This document shows, piece by piece, positions 1 through 12,699 of a DNA stretch of 12,699 bases (the first letter of the stretch is position 1; each line of letters starts with the position of its first letter). This DNA comes from Zygophlyctis sp. KS116 (taxonomy: Eukaryota > Fungi > Chytridiomycota). A program made the position numbers and the translations under genes. The notes below the pieces were generated by a model, which saw only the letters and a program-made list of their open reading frames with translations, was not told where the DNA came from and did not search any database. The stretch lies in contig BAAFSQ010000287.1 of assembly GCA_054661495.1 (NCBI GenBank), positions 1 to 12,699 on the forward strand, written 5' to 3'.

Positions 1-345
1 ATCATACCTTCTATCATTTCATCTATAATTTCAGCGTTAATATCTAAAGGAACTGTGGGTGCATAAGCAATTTCTTCCTCTCCATGATTACAGTTAATAT
101 TATCCGGTAGATGGGAGTTTGGAATACCGTTGTCTTGAAAATATTATATGGAGAAATCATACCTTCTATCATTTCATCTATAATTTCAGCGTTAATATCT
201 AAAGGAACTGTGGGTGCATAAGCAATTTCTTCTTGATGATGGCCACATAGAATATTATCATTTATAAGGGGGGTTTGTACATCATTAACTTAGAATTTTA
301 TATTGAAAATATCATACCTGTAATATCTTCAACAATAGTTGCAGC
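1..345. repeat. Tandem exon+intron repeat, 155-nt period (126-nt exon + 29-nt intron)
   Basis: 1-77 is identical to 156-232. A third, diverged copy starts at 311 (atcatacctgtaatatcttc). Minus-strand donors G|GTATGAT sit at 7, 162 and 317. The repeated peptide is EEIAYAPTVPLDINAEIIDEMIE. Confidence 0.95.
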
Positions 346-2317
346 TTTAGTTAGAGTTTCTTTGGTAGGAGCGGGAATAATTACTGATTCTGAATCGGAA
401 TCTATTGAGTCAATAGAATTAATAGATATAGCATCTGACTCTAAGTAATCTTGATCTAATGCAAACGGTTCGGAAAAAGGAGAAATTGACTGACTTGAGG
501 GGCTCGATTTTAAATTATCGCCTTTTCGTTAATGAAGATAAATACAATTTATAAATGCAACATTCTTATCTCCAACTATATTGAAACCTATTTCAAGCAA
601 TTCACTGTCCTGATTTTCTGAATTCATTTGCTGTCGCAAATCCCCTTGTGGCTGAGTCTCCGGTTCGAAGCATAGATTGTGCTCCATCCCACTAAAAGTT
701 TCTATTTCAGAATCTTTTAATGAATTGATATATTTTTTTTGTGTTATAGAATTAAACAACATCGATCTGGCTTCGGGGGATAGTTCTAAAGGATCAATTG
801 ATTTAACGCGCGGATCATCCATTGAATCAATATTATCCTATTTATCAGAATAATTAGAAAACATACAGGTAATTGAGTAACATCCAAAGTACAAGGAGGA
901 GGAGAATCAGCAAACATTTCGGAAGTAACGTTCCCTCTTGAAGAACTACATGACTGAACATCAAAAGCTTGAGTCATCATTTCATTCTGTCTTCGCATCT
1001 GTGAATAAGGAGATAATACTTCCAAAAATTCATGGTCGTTATTATCCAGCTCGTAATTTGATGATGATGGAAGCTCCATTTGTTGTGTCATGAATTGAAT
1101 TTTTAAGTCTGCTACCAAGCATTCGGAGTCTTGAATTGAAGGAGAAACTAATAGTTAGCCAATAAAGTCATTAAAATACTCATAGAATCTTTCTTTTCGC
1201 TTGGTTTAAAAGTTCCAAATTCTTGTCCGTTCATCATAAACTGATTATCCCGATAGATTTCATAGTTTGGATATGATGCTTGAGAAGCAAATTCTTAATT
1301 TTAAAATATTGGGCCAAATACCTATATCTAGGTCGGAAAAAATACTATCAGTCCTAGAAGGAGAAACTCTAGTGCTAGCATCTCCTTGGACGGTTCTCTG
1401 AGATATCAGATCGGAAGCTTCTTTCGAACACGACTTACTCTTATTTTCAGTTTCAGGATTTTCGTGATCAGACAATGAGGCAATAGAGTCAGACAGTAAT
1501 TCAAATCCTAGATTATTTTCCGAGTCCGAAACCAGCGTCTCTTCTTCATTTTGATCTTTAGACTGATAATTAAAATTAATAAAATACAGATTTTAAAGAT
1601 AACTGTAATTGTCGGGGTAAATGTCTTTTTAAAGGTAAAAGTCCTTCTAATAATGATCGCTGATTTACAGAGGGAAAGAAATCTTTGTATGATAATTGAA
1701 GACCCTCCCATTCTTTTCTTTCCAATTCCTCAATTAAAAGCTCCATATTTTCTAATATGTATTAATAAAATAAAGTACCTGGGGCATCTTCTTGACTTTT
1801 AAGATCACAGAGATTCTTCCAAACTTCATTTGAGCTCGAACTAATGATATTATTAATTGGGATTGGATCGCCAAACACTAAATTACATAAATTCAATATA
1901 AATACCTGAACTCCCAACCGAGCCAATTAACGACATATCATTAATCAACAAATTAAACACGGATTCACTATTAGATTTCTGAAACTTCCAGTCAAGAAGA
2001 GTCAAGATTGCTCCTCTCAGAGACGTAGGCTTCACTCCATTTGCTAAAAATCTGAAATTAAATTGAACTAATTTACTTTTCGACGCATGCTTGAGTTAGA
2101 ACGGCTTCGATTGCACAATGCTTATCAGATATCCAAGCGCTCCAATGAGCGGTAGGATCATCATTTGTAGAAAAACTCATAAACTAAACATTATCTTATA
2201 TTTCTTTACAGAGATTATTTGCACTCTTCTAGCCAAAGAATTCCAAACAAATGATTCTTTAGATGAAACAACCAATTCCAAATCTTTCACTATCCATTTC
2301 CTTAATGCATCAGCCAT
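1..2317 (-). CDS. Putative TPP1/Est3/Tpz1-like telomere protein: N-terminal OB-fold followed by a long acidic, S/T-Q-rich region with duplicated exons; runs off the left edge (>669 aa)
   Basis: ATG at 2317. The frame is continuous after removing GT-AG introns 2209-2184, 2076-2052, 1905-1878, 1778-1752, 1587-1563, 1321-1294, 1179-1148, 866-838, 545-522, 317-289 and 162-134; another donor lies at 7. This joins ORF-track pieces 1260-1475, 786-1118 and 529-822. Spliced N-terminus: MADALRKWIVKDL...RRVQIISF...SAWISDKHCAIEAVLTQACVEKF...SLRGAILTLLDWKF...FNLLINDMSLIGSVGSSVFGDPIPI. It resembles the TPP1/Est3 OB-fold pattern (L-x-x-WI, VQI, ISD-x-H-x-I-x-A, L-x-G-x-x-x-x-L-x-D, FG-x-P). The gene structure is solid; the family call is by eye. 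Confidence 0.7.
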
Positions 2318-4806
2318 TTTTCCTGTTGACACTATAATCACCTAAGATCTGACATGATAGGCGTTGGGCTGTCCAAATATGCACTAGGTAATAACAGGCA
2401 TAAGGGTGCTGCCAGCCTATGAGAAAGCTAATCCATCCAAAAATATATGAAAGAAAATGTTGCCACCTTCTTCCCCTTGCAAATAATACGTACTTCTGCG
2501 GACCATCATCATAAAAAACAGAAGCGTATAATAGTCCAAGAAGATGGTTTTGCATAGAATAAGAATTCTCCCAGCCCGCATGTTTGATCCAAACCAGCAC
2601 ATTCATAATGATGAATGGAAGACAGGCAATTAGTAGTGATAACTGAGGTTGATCGCGCTTTGAAAGGAAATATTTGTACATTGCAAGTAAGCAAATCAAT
2701 TCAAACGGTAGTCCAAGCAAGGGTATTCCTATTAAAGCAATTAAAAGCACGAGCTTGAAAGATATGATGAAACTGGGAAGCTTTAATTTTGAATGGATCC
2801 TAGATGTGAGATTAAGAGTCCAGAGAATAAGATTGAAAACAGATCTACATGATTCATATACCACCAAAACTAGACAGAACCGATAAACAGACGCTTTTCC
2901 TATTAAGATACTGGCAAAAAATTGATTTTGGAAAAAGGACAGGAAAAGAAATATTAGTCCAATTATAGAATAAGGAAATAAGCCAAATGTAACAAATTCC
3001 AAATTTCTTGATTTATAACCTTACAAATGATATGTTAGTAAATACCTTGAATCTTATTTTCTAATTTTGTGGAGATAAACCAAAATCCATACGCAATTAA
3101 CGTACCTATCCAAAACCCGGGATACATTAAAATTAGATTTCCAAGAGTTGCTGTACTATAGATATCAAGGCTAATTGTAAACTTCCCTCTGCTTTCATTC
3201 CAAAGGAAGACTTGAGCATTTTGATTATTCTCTGAAAAGGTAAGAACGGTTTCAGAGACATTATATATGTATATGATTTGTTCCCCATTTACCTGCGCAC
3301 CTATAGGATCCCAAAGACCTTCAATTTCGACTAAATATATTAATCTTAGAAAGTTACCGTTTTTAATAGACATTCGATACACAAAGAGCGGATCGCGTAC
3401 ATTTAAAGCCACTTTTGTTCGAGTACATGAATGGCTCACCAATTTAGATCTTCCAAAAATAATATCTGCAGAGCTTAACATATCAATAAATACCTAGAAA
3501 TCCGAATGACACGGTCTCATCACAATTTTTAGCTATACTTATAATGATATCTGTACCAATGTTTTCGGAAGAAATGCCTATCGTCACATTAATCAATTCA
3601 GGGATTTGAGTTAGAGTCAATTCTGAAAACCGTCCGAATCTGCGAGTATCAGTTCTACCTATTTTATCTGATTCAACTGGAATTTTGCTAGATTCAAAGC
3701 CAACTATTTCAAGGCAAGTTTTCAATCTGCATCCAAAAACTTGTATTTTATAATCTTGTTTTGAAAAAATCTGAAATATGTGCCTTGATGGATCAACCAT
3801 CCAAGTATAATACTTCAAATCTCTTTCAGCAAAAATTCTTCGTTGATCATTTATCACACTTCCTTTAAAACTTTCAAAATTTGAAGGAATCAATCTCAGG
3901 TCATGACTAAACATTGTCCCAAAATATTCCATGACCAAATCTGATTGATTCCCATGAATTTGCGGATATTCAAACAATAAAAAATCAGCTAATTTGATAA
4001 TTAGCTGATTACACCAGAGAAGCATTCTATGATCTGCACCAGACCAAACATCAACCATTCCAGTAGTATACATATTTAGAGAATCTAAAACCTTTGTCAA
4101 ATCTGAAGATATAAGCGTATCCAAAACTCCCCCAGAGATTGATATTAACGTACCAGCAGACATTGTTTGATGCCATTCAGAATTTAATCTTGAAAACAAG
4201 GATAAAAGTTGTCTAGAAATTGAAAACGGAGGCATTTTATGCGGCGTTGCTATTGAAATCAATGTCCATGATTTCTGATCATTTAGTTTAATGAGAGCAT
4301 CTTTGACTACAATCCCACCCATTGAATGAGCAACAATTGGAAAATGATCAATATTTGGATACTTTTGCAGTAAATTTCTAATTACAGACTCTACAAATAC
4401 AGACTGTTTTATAATTGCATTATAATCAAAAGCTGACAATTGTTCATCTAAATCCACTAAAATTAAAACCATTTAAATACCAGTGAATAGATCATAATGA
4501 AAACCACCAACTTTCTGCCCACGCCGATGCAGTTCCGACCCAAGGGATCTAGCCTGCTTATAACTACCGGCATTCCCAGGAATAAATAAAAGTGGCAGAC
4601 TTTCCCCCTGCATATAAATATAAACTACTTACATTAGGGAATCTACCGTCAGTTTCACGATATAGCCAGAGCTTATAACGACCTTGCGTGTCCTGAAGGG
4701 AGTATGATGGGTACATAAAGGTCATTCTACACTGTTGCGGCTCTTTGGGATGCAGTCGGACATAGAGACTAAAACAAAGGACAAGTAAGATACCAAAGTC
4801 TTTCAT
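2310..4806 (-). CDS. BST1: GPI inositol-deacylase (PGAP1/Bst1), ~788 aa
   Basis: Motifs CRMTFMYPSY, LLFIPGNAGSYKQARS, FTVDLDEQLSAF, lipase-type IVAHSMGG, IATPH, ISISGG and VWSGADH..LLWCNQL, followed by a multi-TM C-terminus. Introns 4632-4608, 4480-4457, 3493-3466, 3357-3331 (in-frame, probable) and 3045-3020. Stop TGA at 2312-2310. Confidence 0.93.
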
Positions 4807-4821
4807 TGCCTTCCCCCTATC
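4807..4821. promoter_or_regulatory. 15-nt spacer between the divergent ATGs of BST1 and AP-3 beta (putative bidirectional initiation region)
   Basis: cat-tgccttccccctatc-atg. A C-rich run in otherwise AT-rich DNA; function is inferred from position only. Confidence 0.4.
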
Positions 4822-7145
4822 ATGGAAAACATTCTGTTTGGAGGATTAAATGAGGCTAGAAAATGGACTGTTGGTATGATTAGAGACTCACCGTTTGACT
4901 GGAATGTATTGTCTGGAACTAACTATCTTGAAATGTCTATATCATATTTGCTAAATGATTTACGACTGCTATTGGACTCAAAGTTTGAAAAGGAAAAGAT
5001 TGATGGGCTGAAACGATTATTAGCACTTTTAATACGAGGACGATCTGTGATTGAATACTTTCCAATTGTGATCAAGAATGTCGCAAATCCCAGTTTTCAA
5101 CTAAGGTATCTTTTTATATCCCGTAATGTCAGGAAATATGTGTATATAATATTATTGAAATATGCACATCAAGAGTCAGATATGGCTCTATTGGCAATTA
5201 ATACTTTACAAAAAGATATGAGTGATCAGAATGCGTTTATACGGGCTACCGCTTTGAATGTGATGTCAATGATTAGGATTCCAGAACTTGCTCCTCTATG
5301 TAAGGATATTAATTAACATTTGTAGTATTACTAAGCATAAATAGGGCTCTAAGTGATCTATCCCCAATTGTAAGACGCTCTTGTGCCTTTGCACTGATTG
5401 AATGTTTTTTGTACTTTTTATGTCTAAAAGTTTTTATAGAATGAACCAAAAGTTAGTAGATAGCTTATTAGAGCCTTTAAAGATTCTTTTATGTGATGTA
5501 TCAAGTTATGTGATTGGGCCTGCAGTTGCTGCGTTTAATGTGATATGTCCAGACAGTTTTGAATTCATTCATACGCAATATTTTAGACTTTGCTCATTAT
5601 TGTCAGATGTGGATGAGGAATCTCAAGTGGAAATATTAAAGTGCCTTCTTAGATATGGGCGGACGCAATTTGTTGAGTCGCGTAATAAAACTGAAACTGA
5701 ATTACATTCGGATCATCAGTTACTTTTAGAAAAGACTCAAAATTTGTTATGTAGCAGTAACGCGAGTGTAAGTATTGATGAACTCATAATTCAGACGGTG
5801 TGCGCGAGCTGTTCTCTGCTTTATCATTTGGCGCCGAAATATTTCTTAGAATCAGTCACAAAGGCATTGGTAAGGATATTTATAGTTTCGAACCCTGAAT
5901 TTGCTCTACAAATTCTAAGTCATTTGCTTATTCTGGTTAAAGAGGTTCCGCAGTATGTAGAGCCTTTCTTTCATCTCTTTTATTTATTTGAGGGAGATTC
6001 AACAGAGGTCGCTTGCATGAAATTATCCATTCTTGGTTTTATTTTGCCAAAATATGATCAGATAATTCAAGAATTTCAACTGTATTTACAGGGGGATTCC
6101 ACCAACAATATTTTACATATTATCTCGGTAAAAGTATAAATGTAACAAAAAGATTTATGGTCAAATGTCAATTAGACGCTCTGATTTCGCATGGAAAATA
6201 TTAAAACAGTTATGCAAACTATTAGACAATCCTAGCGGTAATTATTTTCCTATATTTGATCTAATACAAAGACAAGGTTGCTAATGGTGCAATCGTATCA
6301 ATTCAAGTAGTTTTGAGTAAAAATCCAGACTGGCTGCCAAAAATAATTCCTGTTCTGATTAATTCACTTCCGAGATTAGAAAACACAGGCAAACAGTCTG
6401 TTTATTGGCTATGTGGAGAATATTCGTGTAAATATGCAAATGATTTTCATTGGACCGCTGATCTGGTACGTTTAGCAGCATTGGCTTTTTCCAAAGAGTC
6501 TTACCTTGTAAAACTCCAAATAATGACTTTGGCTGTTCAAATTTACGCATCCACCACGCAAGAAAAGCAAATAATATGGATTTTGTTGGACTATATACTT
6601 TCAATGGCAAAGTTTGATAAAAATATTGATGTTCGAGATCGATCAAGATTTTTTCGCAAGATATTTGACATGGAAATCATTGATTTAAAAAAGCTTCTTT
6701 TTGTGGACACTTTAGCTTGTGGCAGTGAAATCAATGTAGAAAAAAAGACATATGTTTTCGGGACTTTATCTTGTTACAGAGCCTGCAAATTAAAAGGATA
6801 TCACCCTTTGCCTCAATTCCCTCTAAAAAACCTCGCAACATACAGAGGTCAAACTGTAATTTCAACCATTATAATGAAAAGGGTAGCAAAATCGTATCAA
6901 AAGGCGTTAGCGAATATACAAGAACTACGACAGCTCCCCACTCAACCTTGAAAAATATCGAGTCTCTTGAAGACTTTTTAAGTTCCAATGACAGCTATGA
7001 TTCAGAAAGCGAGGAAAATTTGGACTCAAAAAGCATCAACATGGATCAAGACTTTTTACGAAATAATGATGACAGTAACACAGATCCGGCTACAACTATA
7101 CCTCCTACAATTCCCAATCCTACCAATCCCTCTATTATTAAATAA
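4822..7145 (+). CDS. APL6: AP-3 adaptor complex beta subunit (Apl6/AP3B), ~709 aa; trunk plus acidic hinge, no obvious ear domain
   Basis: Motifs LLDSKFEKEKIDGLKRLLAL, FPIVIKNVA..LRKYVYIILLKYA, ALLAINTLQKDMSDQNAFIRATALNVMSMIR, DLSPIVRR, LRYGRTQF, AKFDKNIDVRDRSRF, GYHPLPQFP and SLEDFL+acidic tract. Introns 5106-5132, 5300-5325, 5411-5439, 5768-5794, 6128-6152, 6238-6271 and 6856-6881. The spliced length of 2130 nt is a multiple of 3. Confidence 0.92.
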
Positions 7146-7608
7146 GGCAAAATACCTCTTTGAACACTTTCATTAATCAGTGTACGAAGGGAGATTGCTT
7201 GTGGATTTTGACCTTCAACATTTAGTAATGCATCATTGAATTTTCTCGCTTCCTAATAACTTTGAGATGAAATAATTACTCTATACTTTCCCAACTTAAA
7301 ATTCCCAAGAGCCAAATAATAGAGACATTCCCGCCTTCTGGACGGAGATTCCGAATAGATCTCCTGCAATAATGCGACCCCATGCTCTTGATCTTTTTTA
7401 TTAGCACTTCGCACTATGCTAAGATCAAAAACTATTACCGAGTCCCCAACCAAAGTTGAATTTCAATTGTAGACTTGGATGCGGAAGTTCTGCTTCAAAC
7501 TCTTCTCTCAGTAACTGTAAAGTAAAAACTTTGATTCATTACAGATATTTCATAATCAGACAATGCTACAGTCGCTTCAACAGCATACGGAAGATCGTCG
7601 CCTGCCAT
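7046..7608 (-). CDS. FIS1: Mitochondrial fission 1 protein (TPR domain + C-terminal tail anchor), 152 aa
   Basis: ATG at 7608; introns 7542-7515, 7438-7414, 7279-7253 and 7155-7132. Spliced product: MAGDDLPYA...[12 protein letters not shown]...GVALLQEIY...[80 protein letters not shown]. Stop TGA at 7048-7046. Confidence 0.95.
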
Positions 7609-7616
7609 TCTTTCGC

Positions 7617-8694
7617 CTAAACTTTGCCAACTGGCCCAATAGTAAACTTGCAAAGCCGAGCCAAAAGTCCGGAAAGTTGTAAAAGCGTAGAGCATCCTTC
7701 AAGTAGCTTCATATGAGTAGTCCCTATTTCCTGTAAATAATTTTAGTATAAAAGACTTACTTTTATAAATTCAAGTTTTAGAAATTCTGCCATATCAAAG
7801 GTTTTTGTAACCTTGAAAAGCGTTCCTATAATATCCAGAGCAGAAAATCCTTGACTCCAAAGACCATTAAGTATTAAAATAGCTTTATCTGCATCACCCT
7901 TGATACAAGATTGAATAATCTCATTAATCTTGTGAGGATGTGGCATATCACAGACTAATAATTTTGTTAAATCTTATTACCTTTAAAAACATTATCTCGA
8001 TTTATAAATCCAAAACCAGAATGTGTAGACTGAAGATTATTTATTGCCTGACGCATATCCCCTAATATTAATTAACTTTGACCAACCTTCACTAGTAAAA
8101 ACCACTGCTTCTAGCCCATCTGGTGTATACTTTACATTTTCTTCTACACAAATTTCAACTAATCTCTCTAAAACCTGAGAATTATTCAATGGAATAAATC
8201 TAAGAATAGCACATCTAGACTGAATTGGTTCAATTATTTTTGATGACATATTACATGCCAAGGCAAATCGTGTAGTTGCAGAGTAAATTTCCATTGTTCT
8301 ACGAAGAGCCTGTTGAGCCCCAGAAGTCATACTATCAGCCTCATCCAATATAATTATTTTGTGTCTATTAGCAGGCAAAGTAACTTTTTTCTGTGCAAAC
8401 ATCTTTATTCGATTCCTTACGACTTCAATTCCTCTAAATATTAAAAAGATGAGCTTACCGATCATCAGAGGCATTCAATTCTAAAACCGCTTCCTTGTAA
8501 TGCTCTCCCAAGAGTTCATGCGCCAAACAAAGAATCGACGTTGTTTTCCCAATCCCAGGCGGCCCACTCAGTATCAAATTGGGCACATTACCTTGCTTTG
8601 CAATCACCTGCAATCTTGAAAGAGTTTCTTCATGGCCAACCATATCCTTTAAAAGAGCAGGACGATACTTTTCAACCCATGGAAGTCCAGCCAT
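7617..8694 (-). CDS. RFC4: Replication factor C small subunit (yeast Rfc4 / human RFC2 type), 323 aa
   Basis: Motifs PWVEKYRP, Walker [35 protein letters not shown], Walker [24 protein letters not shown] and EFIKEIG. Introns 8458-8434, 8086-8062, 7980-7955 and 7760-7731. Stop TAG at 7619-7617. Confidence 0.96.
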
Positions 8695-8713
8695 TTCTAA
8701 TTTTTCAAACAAA
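8695..8713. promoter_or_regulatory. 19-nt spacer between the divergent ATGs of RFC4 and the Nudix gene
   Basis: cat-ttctaatttttcaaacaaa-atg. Function is inferred from position only. Confidence 0.4.
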
Positions 8714-9325
8714 ATGATTGCCAAAATACAAAAACTATTGACAAATTCAAATCCAATAATTCAGACAACTAATGCAAAAGAAGCCTCTGTTCTCTTAACA
8801 TTAGTGACTGTTAAAGATACGCTCTCACTCTTGTATACTCTACGCTCTCCTGCTCTACAACGAAACTCTGGACAAGTCAGTTTTCCAGGAGGAATGAAGG
8901 ATCCTCAAGATAAGGACTATGAGGCTACTGCTCAAAGAGAAACAAGGGAAGAGATTGGAATCTCAAATGTTTTAATTCTAGGAAGACTAGCACCAGTTCT
9001 AGATAGGACATTAACAATTAGAGTTCATCCTATTGTTGGATATGTGCATGGTAGCATTATTCCTAAAGATCTAAAATGTAATCCAGCAGAAGTTTCAAGT
9101 GTATTTTCTGTTGGACTAGAGGATTTAATCTCAAAGAGGAATTGTGCCATTCAGACATTTAATTCACCTTTTAAAATGTCTATTCCTTCTTGGGACATTA
9201 AAGCAGATGAATTTGGAATTGGGTCAGTCTCTATTCAAGATTCTAATTTTAAAATATGGGGACTGACAGCATATATTACTGATCAATTTTTAAGACTTTT
9301 GGATCCAAAAACCCTTAAATTGTAA
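8714..9325 (+). CDS. Nudix hydrolase, CoA pyrophosphatase family (NUDT8/NUDT7/Pcd1-like), 203 aa, apparently intronless
   Basis: NuCoA motif LLYTLRS...GQVSFPGG followed by the Nudix box [23 protein letters not shown], then NPAEVSSVF and KIWGLTA. First ATG at 8714, preceded by AAA. Confidence 0.92.
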
Positions 9326-9331
9326 AGTAAA

Positions 9332-10122
9332 ATGGCTAGAAACAGAGAGAAAGCACAGTCTATGCTCTATCGGTTTAGAGAAATTCAACTTAAAGAAGCA
9401 GGTCTGCCAACTGTTTCTAGTCGTCCAAGAGAGGCAACAACAGTAATGAGTGTTCGTGCTTGTGAAAGATATCGAGCAAATGTTATAAAGGAACTAGACT
9501 CTAAAATATCTAGAATACAAGATTGTAATTTTTGTTGAGATAATGTAAAGCATCTTTACAAGAGACTGCAATCAGAGATTTGAATGATGAAATTAATAAA
9601 TTATTAAAGGAAAAGGGACATTGGGAATGGCAGATTAAGGAATTAGGAGGAAATATTGCTGATGTATGAATATTATTTAATTTTAGGATATATCTCTTGA
9701 TCTTTCAAATGGAAAGGAAGCTCCTGGAACTACAAAGGGATACAAGTAGATTTTATAATCTAAATTTTAGATATTTTGGAAGAGCTAAAGAATTGCCTGG
9801 GGTGAAAGAGTTGTTTGAACAGCATGAAGAAGAGAAGAAGGATTATATTAGCAAATTAGAATTGGCATCTAGAATAGATCCAGATTATTTTGGATATAGA
9901 GATGAAGAAGATGGGAGACTATTGTCTTATGAAAAGAGTCGTGAAATGATTGGTAAAAAAGATTCATTAATATTAGCATTGCAAAATTTGGGACTTGATA
10001 GTGTACCAAACTTGGCTGTAAAAGATTATCCAATGAAAAACATTCCTTCTCTGTCAGAGGTTGAAGCCATGGTTGTGGCAGAAAAAGCTGCGTTCCTAAG
10101 AAAAAAGTACAATTTAGTCTAA
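9332..10122 (+). CDS. ISY1: Pre-mRNA splicing factor Isy1 (Prp19/NTC complex), ~230 aa
   Basis: Motifs [59 protein letters not shown] and [10 protein letters not shown]. Introns 9525-9550, 9664-9686, 9746-9770 and 9953-9976 (in-frame, probable). Confidence 0.95.
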
Positions 10123-10123
10123 A

Positions 10124-11952
10124 ATGAAGGTATGGGATCCAAATGCACCAATGACTTCTTCTTTTTCTCCCACTTGTATTTTTTCCACCGGATCTCCAAA
10201 TCATTTTGGATGTCCTCATTTGGCTGCTTTAAAAACTCCATTGCCGACTCCAGGAATGGATGCGCCAGCAGGCCATTTCCCTCCGCCGTTTGGAAATGTT
10301 TTGCAGTCTTTCCGAATAGCTTTTAGATATCATTTAGTCTCAAAGGAGAATTTACATCATTTGAATCGTGGAAATAGTGCACTTTTAAAGGTATGATGGT
10401 TGATTTTAATTCTAGCTCCCGAATACATCATGCAAGGATTGCAAGCAATCTTCATTCTCCTCTAGATTACATGCATGCTTGCATTGTGACTATCTGGGAT
10501 GTTGGGCTCACGCTAAAGAGCATTTAGGAAATCACTATTTTAGTAAGATTATATATAGATAAATGAAGTGATGGACTTTAGACAAGGTGTTTTATTTTGT
10601 GGAAAATGTCAGGATTATGTCTATGACGCAGACTTTGAGAGAATGCGGATATTGGAGCTAGAGAGGGTGAATGGTCAAATCAAGACTAGTATATCATGAT
10701 TTTTAACAAATAGATGAGGCCAAAATGAATTTTAGAATTAAATCTTGGGCTCCAAATTCTGCTGAAATTTCAATTGTTCAAAAAAATTCAACCATTGTTA
10801 AATGTTCAGGAATTAGAGGTTTGCGAAATTTAGGATCAACTTGCTTCATGAATTCTGTTCTTCAATGTTTTATTCACAATCCTTTGCTTCGCAATTATTT
10901 TTTGGGTTACAAGCATATTCCTGAAAAATGCAACGTATCTAATTGTATGATATGTGAACTTTTTAAGCTTTTCCAATCTGTAATTAATACAATTGATGCA
11001 ACAGGTTTATGATGGAAAAACTTCACCAATAGGGCCAGCATCATTCTTGGCTACTACTTGGGCTGCTGCATCAAATTTGGCCAGTTATTCTCAGCAAGAT
11101 GCACATGAATTTTTCATTTCTGTTTTGAACGAAATTCACAATAACTCAGGTTTATTATTCCGTTAAAATCTTAGGCCATAATGGTGATATGTGTCCGTGT
11201 ATTGTTCATCAGACATTTGCTGGTACTCTTCAATCTAATGTTACATGCCTTGGATGTCAGAATGTCACGACGACTTTTGATCCGTTTCTGTAGGTTTTTT
11301 GCTATCGATAGTAATTCTTTAGTGATATTTCAATAGAGATTAAGAGAGATAAGCCTTCAAAGAGAATGGGAATACTATATGATTGTTCACTTTTGGAATG
11401 CCTAGAAAAGTACTGCTAATTGTCTAACTTCTAGATATACACAGCCTGAAACTCTCGGGCCTAATCAATATCAGTGTTACCGCTGTGGACACAATCAAGA
11501 AGCTACCAAACAGTTATCAATCAAAAATATGCCTCCGGTTTTGAGTTTTCAAATTAAGGTATCGATAATTTCTTCTAAATTAGCAGCGATATGATCATAA
11601 CAATATTGTCAGTTGTTCAAAACTGGAGTCAAAAATATTTTTACCACCTGAAATGGACATTAGTCAGTTCACTCATGCTAAAACTAAAAGTACAAAGAGT
11701 ATAATTTACACACTTTTTGCTGTAATTAAGCATGAGGGATCTTTGGAAAGTGGACATTATGTATCTTTTACTAAGCATAGTGGGAATGTAAAAAAGTCGA
11801 TATTAATTTTAAGTGGTTTCAATTTGATGATCAAGTGGTGACGTTAGTAACTCCGGCGGAGGTCAACAAGGGATATGCGTAACTTTTTATATATTTAACT
11901 TTAAAGATATATGGCATTTTATCTGAAAAACGATGTACAAATTCCGTATTAG
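10124..11952 (+). CDS. UBP8: Ubiquitin C-terminal hydrolase of the Ubp8/USP22 type (zf-UBP + peptidase C19), ~520 aa
   Basis: Motifs GCPHL, RLHACLHC..LGCW, LFCGKCQDYVYD, Cys box GLRNLGSTCFMNSVLQ, QQDAHEFF, CPCIVHQTFAG.LQS.VTC, His box HEGSLESGHY and WFQFDD. Introns 10391-10415, 10543-10568, 10689-10713, 10980-11004, 11150-11174, 11290-11322, 11410-11434, 11559-11586, 11788-11813 and 11879-11906. Stop TAG at 11950-11952. Confidence 0.93.
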
Positions 11953-12196
11953 AGAATGTTTCTAAAATCTGGATACATTTTTAGTTAATTACAAGATTGC
12001 TTGCCGCAAAATTTTCTGTGCAAATGTCAGTGTGGCCTTGTCCAACCTAAGTGTTTCGACCAAAATGACTAACCACAAAAATTAATATCAATGTTTCCCG
12101 ACATTCGTAAACAATTTCTGCATATTAGATTTACTAACGACGAAGCCGCGCCATCTAAATTATAAGTGTCCAACTTATCCGACTTCTTAAATAGAG

Positions 12197-12681
12197 AAGC
12201 CAAGGCAAATTTGTGAATTAGAATTATTGCCCAAAATATATCTTTCGAAATCGAGAAGCAAACACGAATAAGTGTCCCAGCATTTTTGTAAATACAAATG
12301 ATAATTATCTCTTCCTACAATTAATTGAAAAAGATTTGAAACAGGTATTGGATCTGAAATTCTTGTACTTGTTCTTGTGGGATCTCATCTTCAGATAACA
12401 GTTGTTGTAATTGGTTTGGGTCTTGCATAAATTGTGATTTTACTCAAACCAAAGTGATTGGAAATTTGATATACTTGCAAAAGCTGTAATTATTTTCTAA
12501 TTTAAATTGGAGATATCTCTGATTTGCATCCTTTTTTATCAAAATATGAAGAAGTTGAAAGTTTCTACTCTCAAAATATTTTGGACACTTTACTCAACAA
12601 ATACATGTATGGAAATCATTTCTCAATTTGGAAAGATATATCTTGGGCAATCACTCAAATTCAAAAATTATGCCTTGGCTT
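12197..12681. repeat. Diverged inverted repeat: 12197-12257 versus the reverse complement of 12620-12681
   Basis: aagccaaggca-aatttgtgaattagaattattgcccaaaatatatctttcgaaatcgagaa aligns to aagccaaggcataatttttgaatttgagtgattgcccaagatatatctttccaaattgagaa with 54/62 columns identical (manual alignment). Weaker similarity continues inward (aagtgtcc...ttttg). Confidence 0.85.
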
Positions 12682-12699
12682 TTCAATCTAGCTACCAAG
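12506..12699 (+). other. Possible coding fragment of an unknown gene running off the right edge
   Basis: Removing a 29-nt GT-AG intron at 12607-12635 gives an open frame ...DISDLHPFLSKYEEVESFYSQNILDTLLNKYIYILGNHSNSKIMPWLFNLATK. No start codon or family was identified. Confidence 0.3.

Follow-up and report, generated by a model that had tools for sequence, protein, structure and literature searches.

Eight intron-rich housekeeping genes almost without spacers in the compact genome of a chytrid-like fungus

The window, that is the whole stretch of 12,699 nt that was analysed, constitutes an entire contig of an assembly of 12.73 Mb in 1175 contigs, from an uncultured fungus of fresh water. Eight genes were modelled in it (Table 1), seven of them complete and the eighth interrupted at the contig end, and no internal stop is found in any of the eight frames. 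The spliced models were submitted exon by exon to Pfam and gave matches to PGAP1, Adaptin_N, Fis1, RFC, NUDIX, Isy1 and UCH/zf-UBP, in the order given by the initial annotation. From left to right the junction gaps of our own gene models are -8, 15, -100, 8, 19, 6 and 1 nt, identical to those first reported, and the positive gaps add up to 49 nt. The block contains 45 introns, all of the GT-AG type and 23–34 nt long (median 26), which corresponds to about 4.2 introns per kb of CDS. A gene finder, with a first intron model seeded from the window introns and a final model self-trained on other contigs, placed both start and stop exactly in six of the seven complete genes, BST1 being truncated. 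Ordinary spacers would be left if the true start and stop codons were located well inside the models, as the initial annotation had pointed out, but both are conserved in the relatives described below.

Table 1. Features of the window, with coordinates on the forward strand.
Feature	Position	Strand	Description
Left gene, possible TPP1/Est3-like OB-fold protein	1..2317	-	670-aa open frame, 11 introns, runs off contig end
BST1/PGAP1 GPI inositol deacylase	2310..4806	-	788 aa, 5 introns; Pfam PGAP1 E 1e-30
APL6-like adaptin beta subunit	4822..7145	+	709 aa, 7 introns; Pfam Adaptin_N; AP-3 label from the initial annotation
FIS1	7046..7608	-	152 aa, 4 introns; Pfam Fis1_TPR
FIS1 introns	7515-7542, 7414-7438, 7253-7279, 7132-7155	-	positions common to relatives
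RFC small subunit (RFC4/RFC2 type)	7617..8694	-	323 aa, 4 introns; Pfam
NUDT8/PCD1-like Nudix hydrolase (NUD)	8714..9325	+	intronless, 203 aa; Pfam NUDIX, homologues
ISY1 splicing factor	9332..10122	+	230 aa, 4 introns; Pfam Isy1
UBP8/USP22-type deubiquitinase	10124..11952	+	521 aa, 10 introns; Pfam UCH, zf-UBP
MITE-like non-coding element	12188..12690	.	imperfect terminal inverted repeats: arms 50 nt (86%), 25 nt (80%)

The ATG of the left gene overlaps the end of BST1 by 8 nt, and the protein start MADALR is present also in the relaxed relative L003, where the BST1 orthologue ends at a similar place. The Pfam TPP1 match of the left gene is weak (E 0.047), and the TPP1 label is a hint only. 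This gene has 5.5 introns per kb and carries tandem 155-nt exon-plus-intron repeats that add repeated peptide blocks (window 1–310; L026 1099–1485, where 2.5 copies are found with a 97% match). UBP8 starts 1 nt past the ISY1 stop and its start is conserved. The 747 nt to the right of UBP8 are non-coding and contain the MITE-like inverted repeat, and the spacer-free block stops there; the element is indel-rich in comparison with L026, which has a related but differently deleted version. The Nudix C-terminus (window 9300–9325; L003 1618–1630) is -SRL in L003, which we take to be peroxisomal-signal-like, -LKL in most compact relatives and -VLI in L004, and the Nudix N-terminal extension of L003 and L033 is shorter in the compact lineage.

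Three of the seven junctions are not co-directional, two being divergent and one convergent, and the longest same-strand run comprises three genes. The runs are NUD-ISY1-UBP8, RFC-FIS1 and BST1-left gene, and the eight genes are functionally unrelated housekeeping genes with no common pathway. The description of the architecture as operon-like in the initial annotation is not upheld by this layout, nor by the normal spacers of L003 and the variable junctions described below.

Close homologues of the block were found only in metagenomes. Four compact relatives (L004, L027, L029 and L032), with a Nudix protein 68–74% identical to that of the window and an identity at fourfold sites of 0.42–0.56, so that synonymous sites are near-saturated, keep the gene order and the tight junctions. 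Their gaps are 19–27 nt for RFC/NUD, 3–6 nt for NUD/ISY1, 0–1 nt for ISY1/UBP8 and 5–11 nt for FIS1/RFC, the 5-nt gap being that of L027 with its FIS1 ATG at 674. Five of the seven junctions could be compared in these four relatives; for the two BST1 junctions the comparison is limited to L003 and to L026, which is near-identical to the window. In L003 (47% GC) the order of the eight genes is identical and they are separated by 92, 72, ~128, ~239, 144, 159 and 375 nt; since the order is the same with normal spacers, it is independent of spacer loss. Introns in L003 measure 48–78 nt. Of the 12 intron positions that the window has in RFC, FIS1 and ISY1, 11 recur in L003, among them all four of ISY1, and the twelfth is present in L033; two RFC positions are also shared with Rhizophlyctis rosea, and a few extra introns are absent from the compact lineage. 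The shared positions indicate that the introns are ancestral and have been shortened in place. As first proposed, the region has been compacted with its introns retained, both introns and spacers being shorter than in the syntenic L003, and in this unrooted series the relaxed state is probably the ancestral one. In L033, with introns of 54–77 nt, the divergent RFC/Nudix spacer is already only ~35 nt and contains a CGCG motif, indicating that the shrinkage of spacers and that of introns did not go hand in hand. Gene order differs around RFC in R. rosea, around Nudix in Thoreauomyces, and in L001 and L002. L001 belongs to another lineage with different neighbours, RFC being likewise close to the next gene (10001–10887), and one of its genes mixes introns of 21–22 nt with a 92-nt intron.

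A sample of 200 kb from 15 other contigs contained 123 predicted genes, with 87% genic DNA, 2.4 introns per kb of CDS and a modal intron of 25–26 nt. The median gap was 86–102 nt and 14–20% of the gaps were 20 nt or shorter, depending on settings, in ab initio predictions that probably overestimate gaps. The initial statement that there is virtually no intergenic DNA is thus true of the block but not of the genome, and the distance distribution of the 200-kb sample, the kind of check that had been suggested, points to a compact genome in which the block is nevertheless tighter than average. No correlation of gap size with the neighbouring gap or with intron density was found in the 200-kb sample. 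Seven tight gaps in a row have a probability of 2e-6 to 1.5e-5 on the sample figures if gaps are independent; the finder recovered only five of the seven tight gaps of the window, and the corrected expectation is ~0.1–1 such runs among ~7,500 junctions. The block, which was picked from hundreds of windows, is the extreme tight tail of a compact genome and not its norm, and the run of seven junctions is perhaps slightly more than chance.

For the ADP/ATP carrier, Nudix and RFC, most of the best named fungal matches belong to chytrids, and the single-gene tree of the ADP/ATP carrier is poorly resolved (90/91 with Borealophlyctis). An assignment to Rozellomycota was considered and dropped, as the named matches point to chytrids; a search for NTT gave no hit, which is uninformative. 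A 19-nt universal primer pattern matched only the mitochondrial SSU. The assembly includes a mitochondrial genome (L034, G000 C172:18185-21203) in which the SSU and LSU rRNA are divergently oriented; it also contains GC-rich palindromes (CCCCT..AGGGG type) and, at the end, an atp9-like start. Frames of a Ty3/gypsy-type LTR retrotransposon are located on L025 (G000 C350) and repeated AAA-ATPase-like genes on L016 and L019, indicating that mobile as well as expanded families persist in this compact genome.

The APL6/FIS1 overlap of 100 nt includes 86 nt of CDS on CDS. The APL6 stop (7143–7145) is located within the antisense FIS1 intron 7132–7155, which is in a position (124/1) common to L004, L027 and L033 and is spliced, its 24 letters being left out in RNA contig 1. 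The last ~33 codons of APL6 are antisense to the last FIS1 exon, the two frames being aligned at their third codon positions, and the overlap is -94 to -100 in the compact relatives. In L003, APL6 ends directly after its acidic stretch. In the antisense frame a stop can arise only opposite a FIS1 codon for Tyr, His or Gln. Such codons are absent from the membrane-anchor exon, and the first stop in the APL6 frame is found within the AT-rich FIS1 intron in all four species examined. The APL6 tail is conserved because FIS1 is constrained, and APL6 would now read on antisense across the membrane-anchor exon until the intron supplies a stop.

RNA evidence comes from one freshwater metatranscriptome run that covers a small share of the stretch, with eight short unstranded contigs compared over 4500–10400; being assembled short reads, they show neither transcript ends nor strand. 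Four introns were confirmed as spliced, two in FIS1, one in RFC and one in UBP8. Contig 1 (7080–7252) lacks 7132–7155 and jumps 7253–7279 with its loose end, loose ends being 11–12 letters; both are minus-strand FIS1 introns, and this spliced FIS1 RNA overlaps the end of the APL6 CDS. Contig 2 jumps the RFC intron 7731–7760 and reaches 7589, passing the RFC stop, the 8-nt spacer, the FIS1 ATG and at least 20 nt of FIS1 CDS, and it is the only one of the eight that crosses a spacer. Contig 8 is spliced at the UBP8 intron 10391–10415, and contig 5 is unspliced over ISY1 introns (9526–9676), which might represent read-through, pre-mRNA or DNA. Transcripts overlap a neighbouring CDS at two junctions, FIS1/RFC and APL6/FIS1, and none of the eight short contigs of this run covers two whole ORFs. 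The contigs show overlap, not polycistrony. The initial proposal that promoters, UTRs and poly(A) signals must lie inside neighbours is borne out for UTRs, which reach into the neighbouring CDS in the two spliced contigs. An RNA contig has one extra T at 7610 in the FIS1/RFC spacer, as has L026 (9 nt), indicating that the length of this spacer varies between strains.

An unbiased k-mer scan of the sample identified CGCG, ACGTCA, GTCCGA and GCCCTA/TAGGGC (RCCCTA) as enriched upstream of starts, and AATAAA as enriched after stops. The promoter-like motif set is found at 6.2 per kb in upstream spacers versus 0.75 per kb in gene bodies, a distribution that fits the expectation for gene-by-gene transcription. 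RCCCTA is located in the last Nudix codons, 13–19 nt before the ISY1 ATG, in four relatives, with the reading frame shifted by indels in L004, and the window itself has ACCCTT at the site. As an embedded ISY1 promoter element RCCCTA is suggestive only, the site having been spotted before testing and its four occurrences being one homologous site, and the conservation may be that of the Nudix C-terminus. The test for embedded motifs gave 3 versus 1.6 expected in the sample. In the block, no excess of synonymous conservation was seen at the few fourfold sites, of low power, upstream of neighbouring starts. No AATAAA is present within 150 nt after the window stops.

The junctions do not show a fixed stop-start motif such as TAATG or ATGA, the gaps across junctions and species being 0, 1, 3, 5, 6, 8, 9, 11 and -8 nt, and what is left of the spacer consists mostly of the A-rich start-codon surroundings that are preferred genome-wide. 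The upstream CDSs contain 11–52 ATGs, so that leaky scanning is disfavoured, and spacers of 0–6 nt should be too short for a separate acceptor tract of the kind used in SL trans-spliced operons of nematode or trypanosome type. A read-through fusion was considered for the in-frame NUD/ISY1 gaps (3 or 6 nt) and rejected as weak, since there are only two states and the ISY1/UBP8 frame varies between species.

The reading that we prefer, with a probability of roughly 0.65, is that the genes are separately promoted and have their UTRs and signals inside their neighbours. In this chytrid-like fungus a syntenic block inherited from an ancestor and made up of unrelated housekeeping genes would have been squeezed by lineage-wide DNA loss, in which introns shrank in place from ~50–80 to ~26 nt and spacers from ~70–375 nt to little beyond the A-rich start-codon context. 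Each gene most likely would keep its own transcription start and its own capped mRNA, promoters, 5' and 3' UTRs and cleavage signals would sit within neighbouring CDSs and introns, and overlapping and some read-through transcripts would be by-products. The gene models, the shrinkage relative to L003, the conserved junctions and the transcript overlap at two junctions are observed; separate promoters, a deletion bias as the cause and a relaxed ancestral state are the probable part of this reading. Against it stand the negative synonymous-site result, of low power, the lack of AATAAA after the window stops, the deviating ACCCTT of the window and the run of seven tight junctions, which is rarer than would be predicted for independent gaps. 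Since the relative has the same order with normal gaps, the block points to extreme genome shrinking with overlapping messages and not to a bacterial-style operon.

An annotation artefact, with the true starts and stops deeper inside the models and ordinary spacers left between them, is highly improbable; start codons are predicted and APL6 offers further in-frame ATGs (codons 19 and 38), but as many as five compact relatives, and in part L003 too, retain the first and last codons, the Pfam match of ISY1 starts at residue 1, and the RFC motif WVEKYRP is found at residue 6. A mixed mode as in microsporidia, where termination is weak, multigene read-through RNAs are abundant alongside monocistronic ones and only the 5'-most ORF of each RNA is translated, differs from separate promotion only in degree and is an unlikely alternative. 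It agrees with the RFC RNA that runs on into FIS1, and the unspliced contig over 9526–9676 could be read-through, or pre-mRNA or DNA; both forms coexist in Encephalitozoon cuniculi (PMC2803860), but no contig extends across two whole ORFs here, among short-read contigs that carry no end or strand information.

We regard it as improbable, more so than the mixed mode, that the runs NUD-ISY1-UBP8, RFC-FIS1 and BST1-left gene are polycistronic mRNAs with downstream ORFs translated by termination-reinitiation. Gaps of 0–11 nt have been held across a near-saturated synonymous distance, the spliced RFC contig goes past the FIS1 ATG, the same-strand stops are not followed by a canonical poly(A) hexamer, and green algae (PMC7896298) and Agaricomycetes (PMC4503453) provide documented cases of polycistrons. 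However, the gap is variable and neither TAATG nor ATGA coupling is fixed, junctions between divergent or convergent genes are equally tight and conserved, and the genes lack a common pathway. The algal kind favours leaky scanning past short upstream ORFs (median 444–600 nt, PMC7896298), as opposed to the ATG-rich CDSs of 0.6–2.4 kb here, and fungal polycistronic genes are also transcribed independently (PMC4503453). In a stronger form, compaction itself would have merged transcription units in this chytrid lineage: NUD-ISY1-UBP8 and RFC-FIS1 would each be expressed as one intron-rich polycistronic mRNA, and reinitiation would give access to the long downstream ORFs. This form is as doubtful; if true, the merged units would be eukaryotic operons that arose de novo, and a syntenic relative would still display the ancestral monocistronic state.

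In the literature searched, with most subscription journals outside its scope, no report of such packing in chytrids was found, and the block adds a chytrid-like fungus, whose gene set is apparently ordinary, to the nucleomorphs, and in part the parasites and picoalgae, in which spacer-free, intron-rich packing is known. L003, with spacers of 72–375 nt and introns of 48–78 nt, and the compact lineage, with gaps of -100 to 27 nt and introns of 23–34 nt, form a before-and-after series, which allows tests of where promoters and poly(A) sites are relocated as spacers vanish and of whether compaction alone can yield polycistrons.

Microsporidia are intron-poor; the block resembles theirs in its short spacers and overlapping transcripts, whereas the best named fungal matches of the window organism are chytrids. 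In E. cuniculi and Antonospora locustae spacers are short, control elements are displaced into neighbours and transcripts are overlapping or multigene, and E. cuniculi has few CDS overlaps of the head-to-head or head-to-tail type, nine being left after correction (PMC2803860). Giardia muris has a median intergenic distance of 37 nt, below the predicted ~90–100 nt of the fungus, with 9.5% of genes overlapping a neighbour and a poly(A) signal that overlaps the stop (PMC7641422), but unlike the fungus it has three cis-introns genome-wide. The polycistronic loci of green algae and Agaricomycetes are similar in their closely spaced same-strand ORFs and conserved order (PMC7896298, PMC4503453), but they were defined by long reads, whereas the block is known from short contigs and sequence, and the algal inter-ORF medians of 212–260 nt and short upstream ORFs (PMC7896298) are unlike the block. 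Ostreococcus species have free-living genomes of 12.6–13.2 Mb with overlapping opposite-strand transcripts and retained introns, and intergenic distances under 200 nt in O. tauri (PMC2367439), but they are green algae with longer introns in only 20–25% of the transcripts. The combination of compact and intron-rich is already known from the Bigelowiella natans nucleomorph and, in milder form, from Ostreococcus (PMC6009652, PMC2367439). The nucleomorph, with almost 900 introns of 18–21 nt in 283 genes and antisense or overlapping transcription (PMC6009652), is likewise very compact with many tiny introns kept, but it is a 370-kb endosymbiont relic with massive gene loss, whereas the fungus has a 12.7-Mb assembly, near full-length proteins, transposons, a mitochondrion and introns of 23–34 nt.
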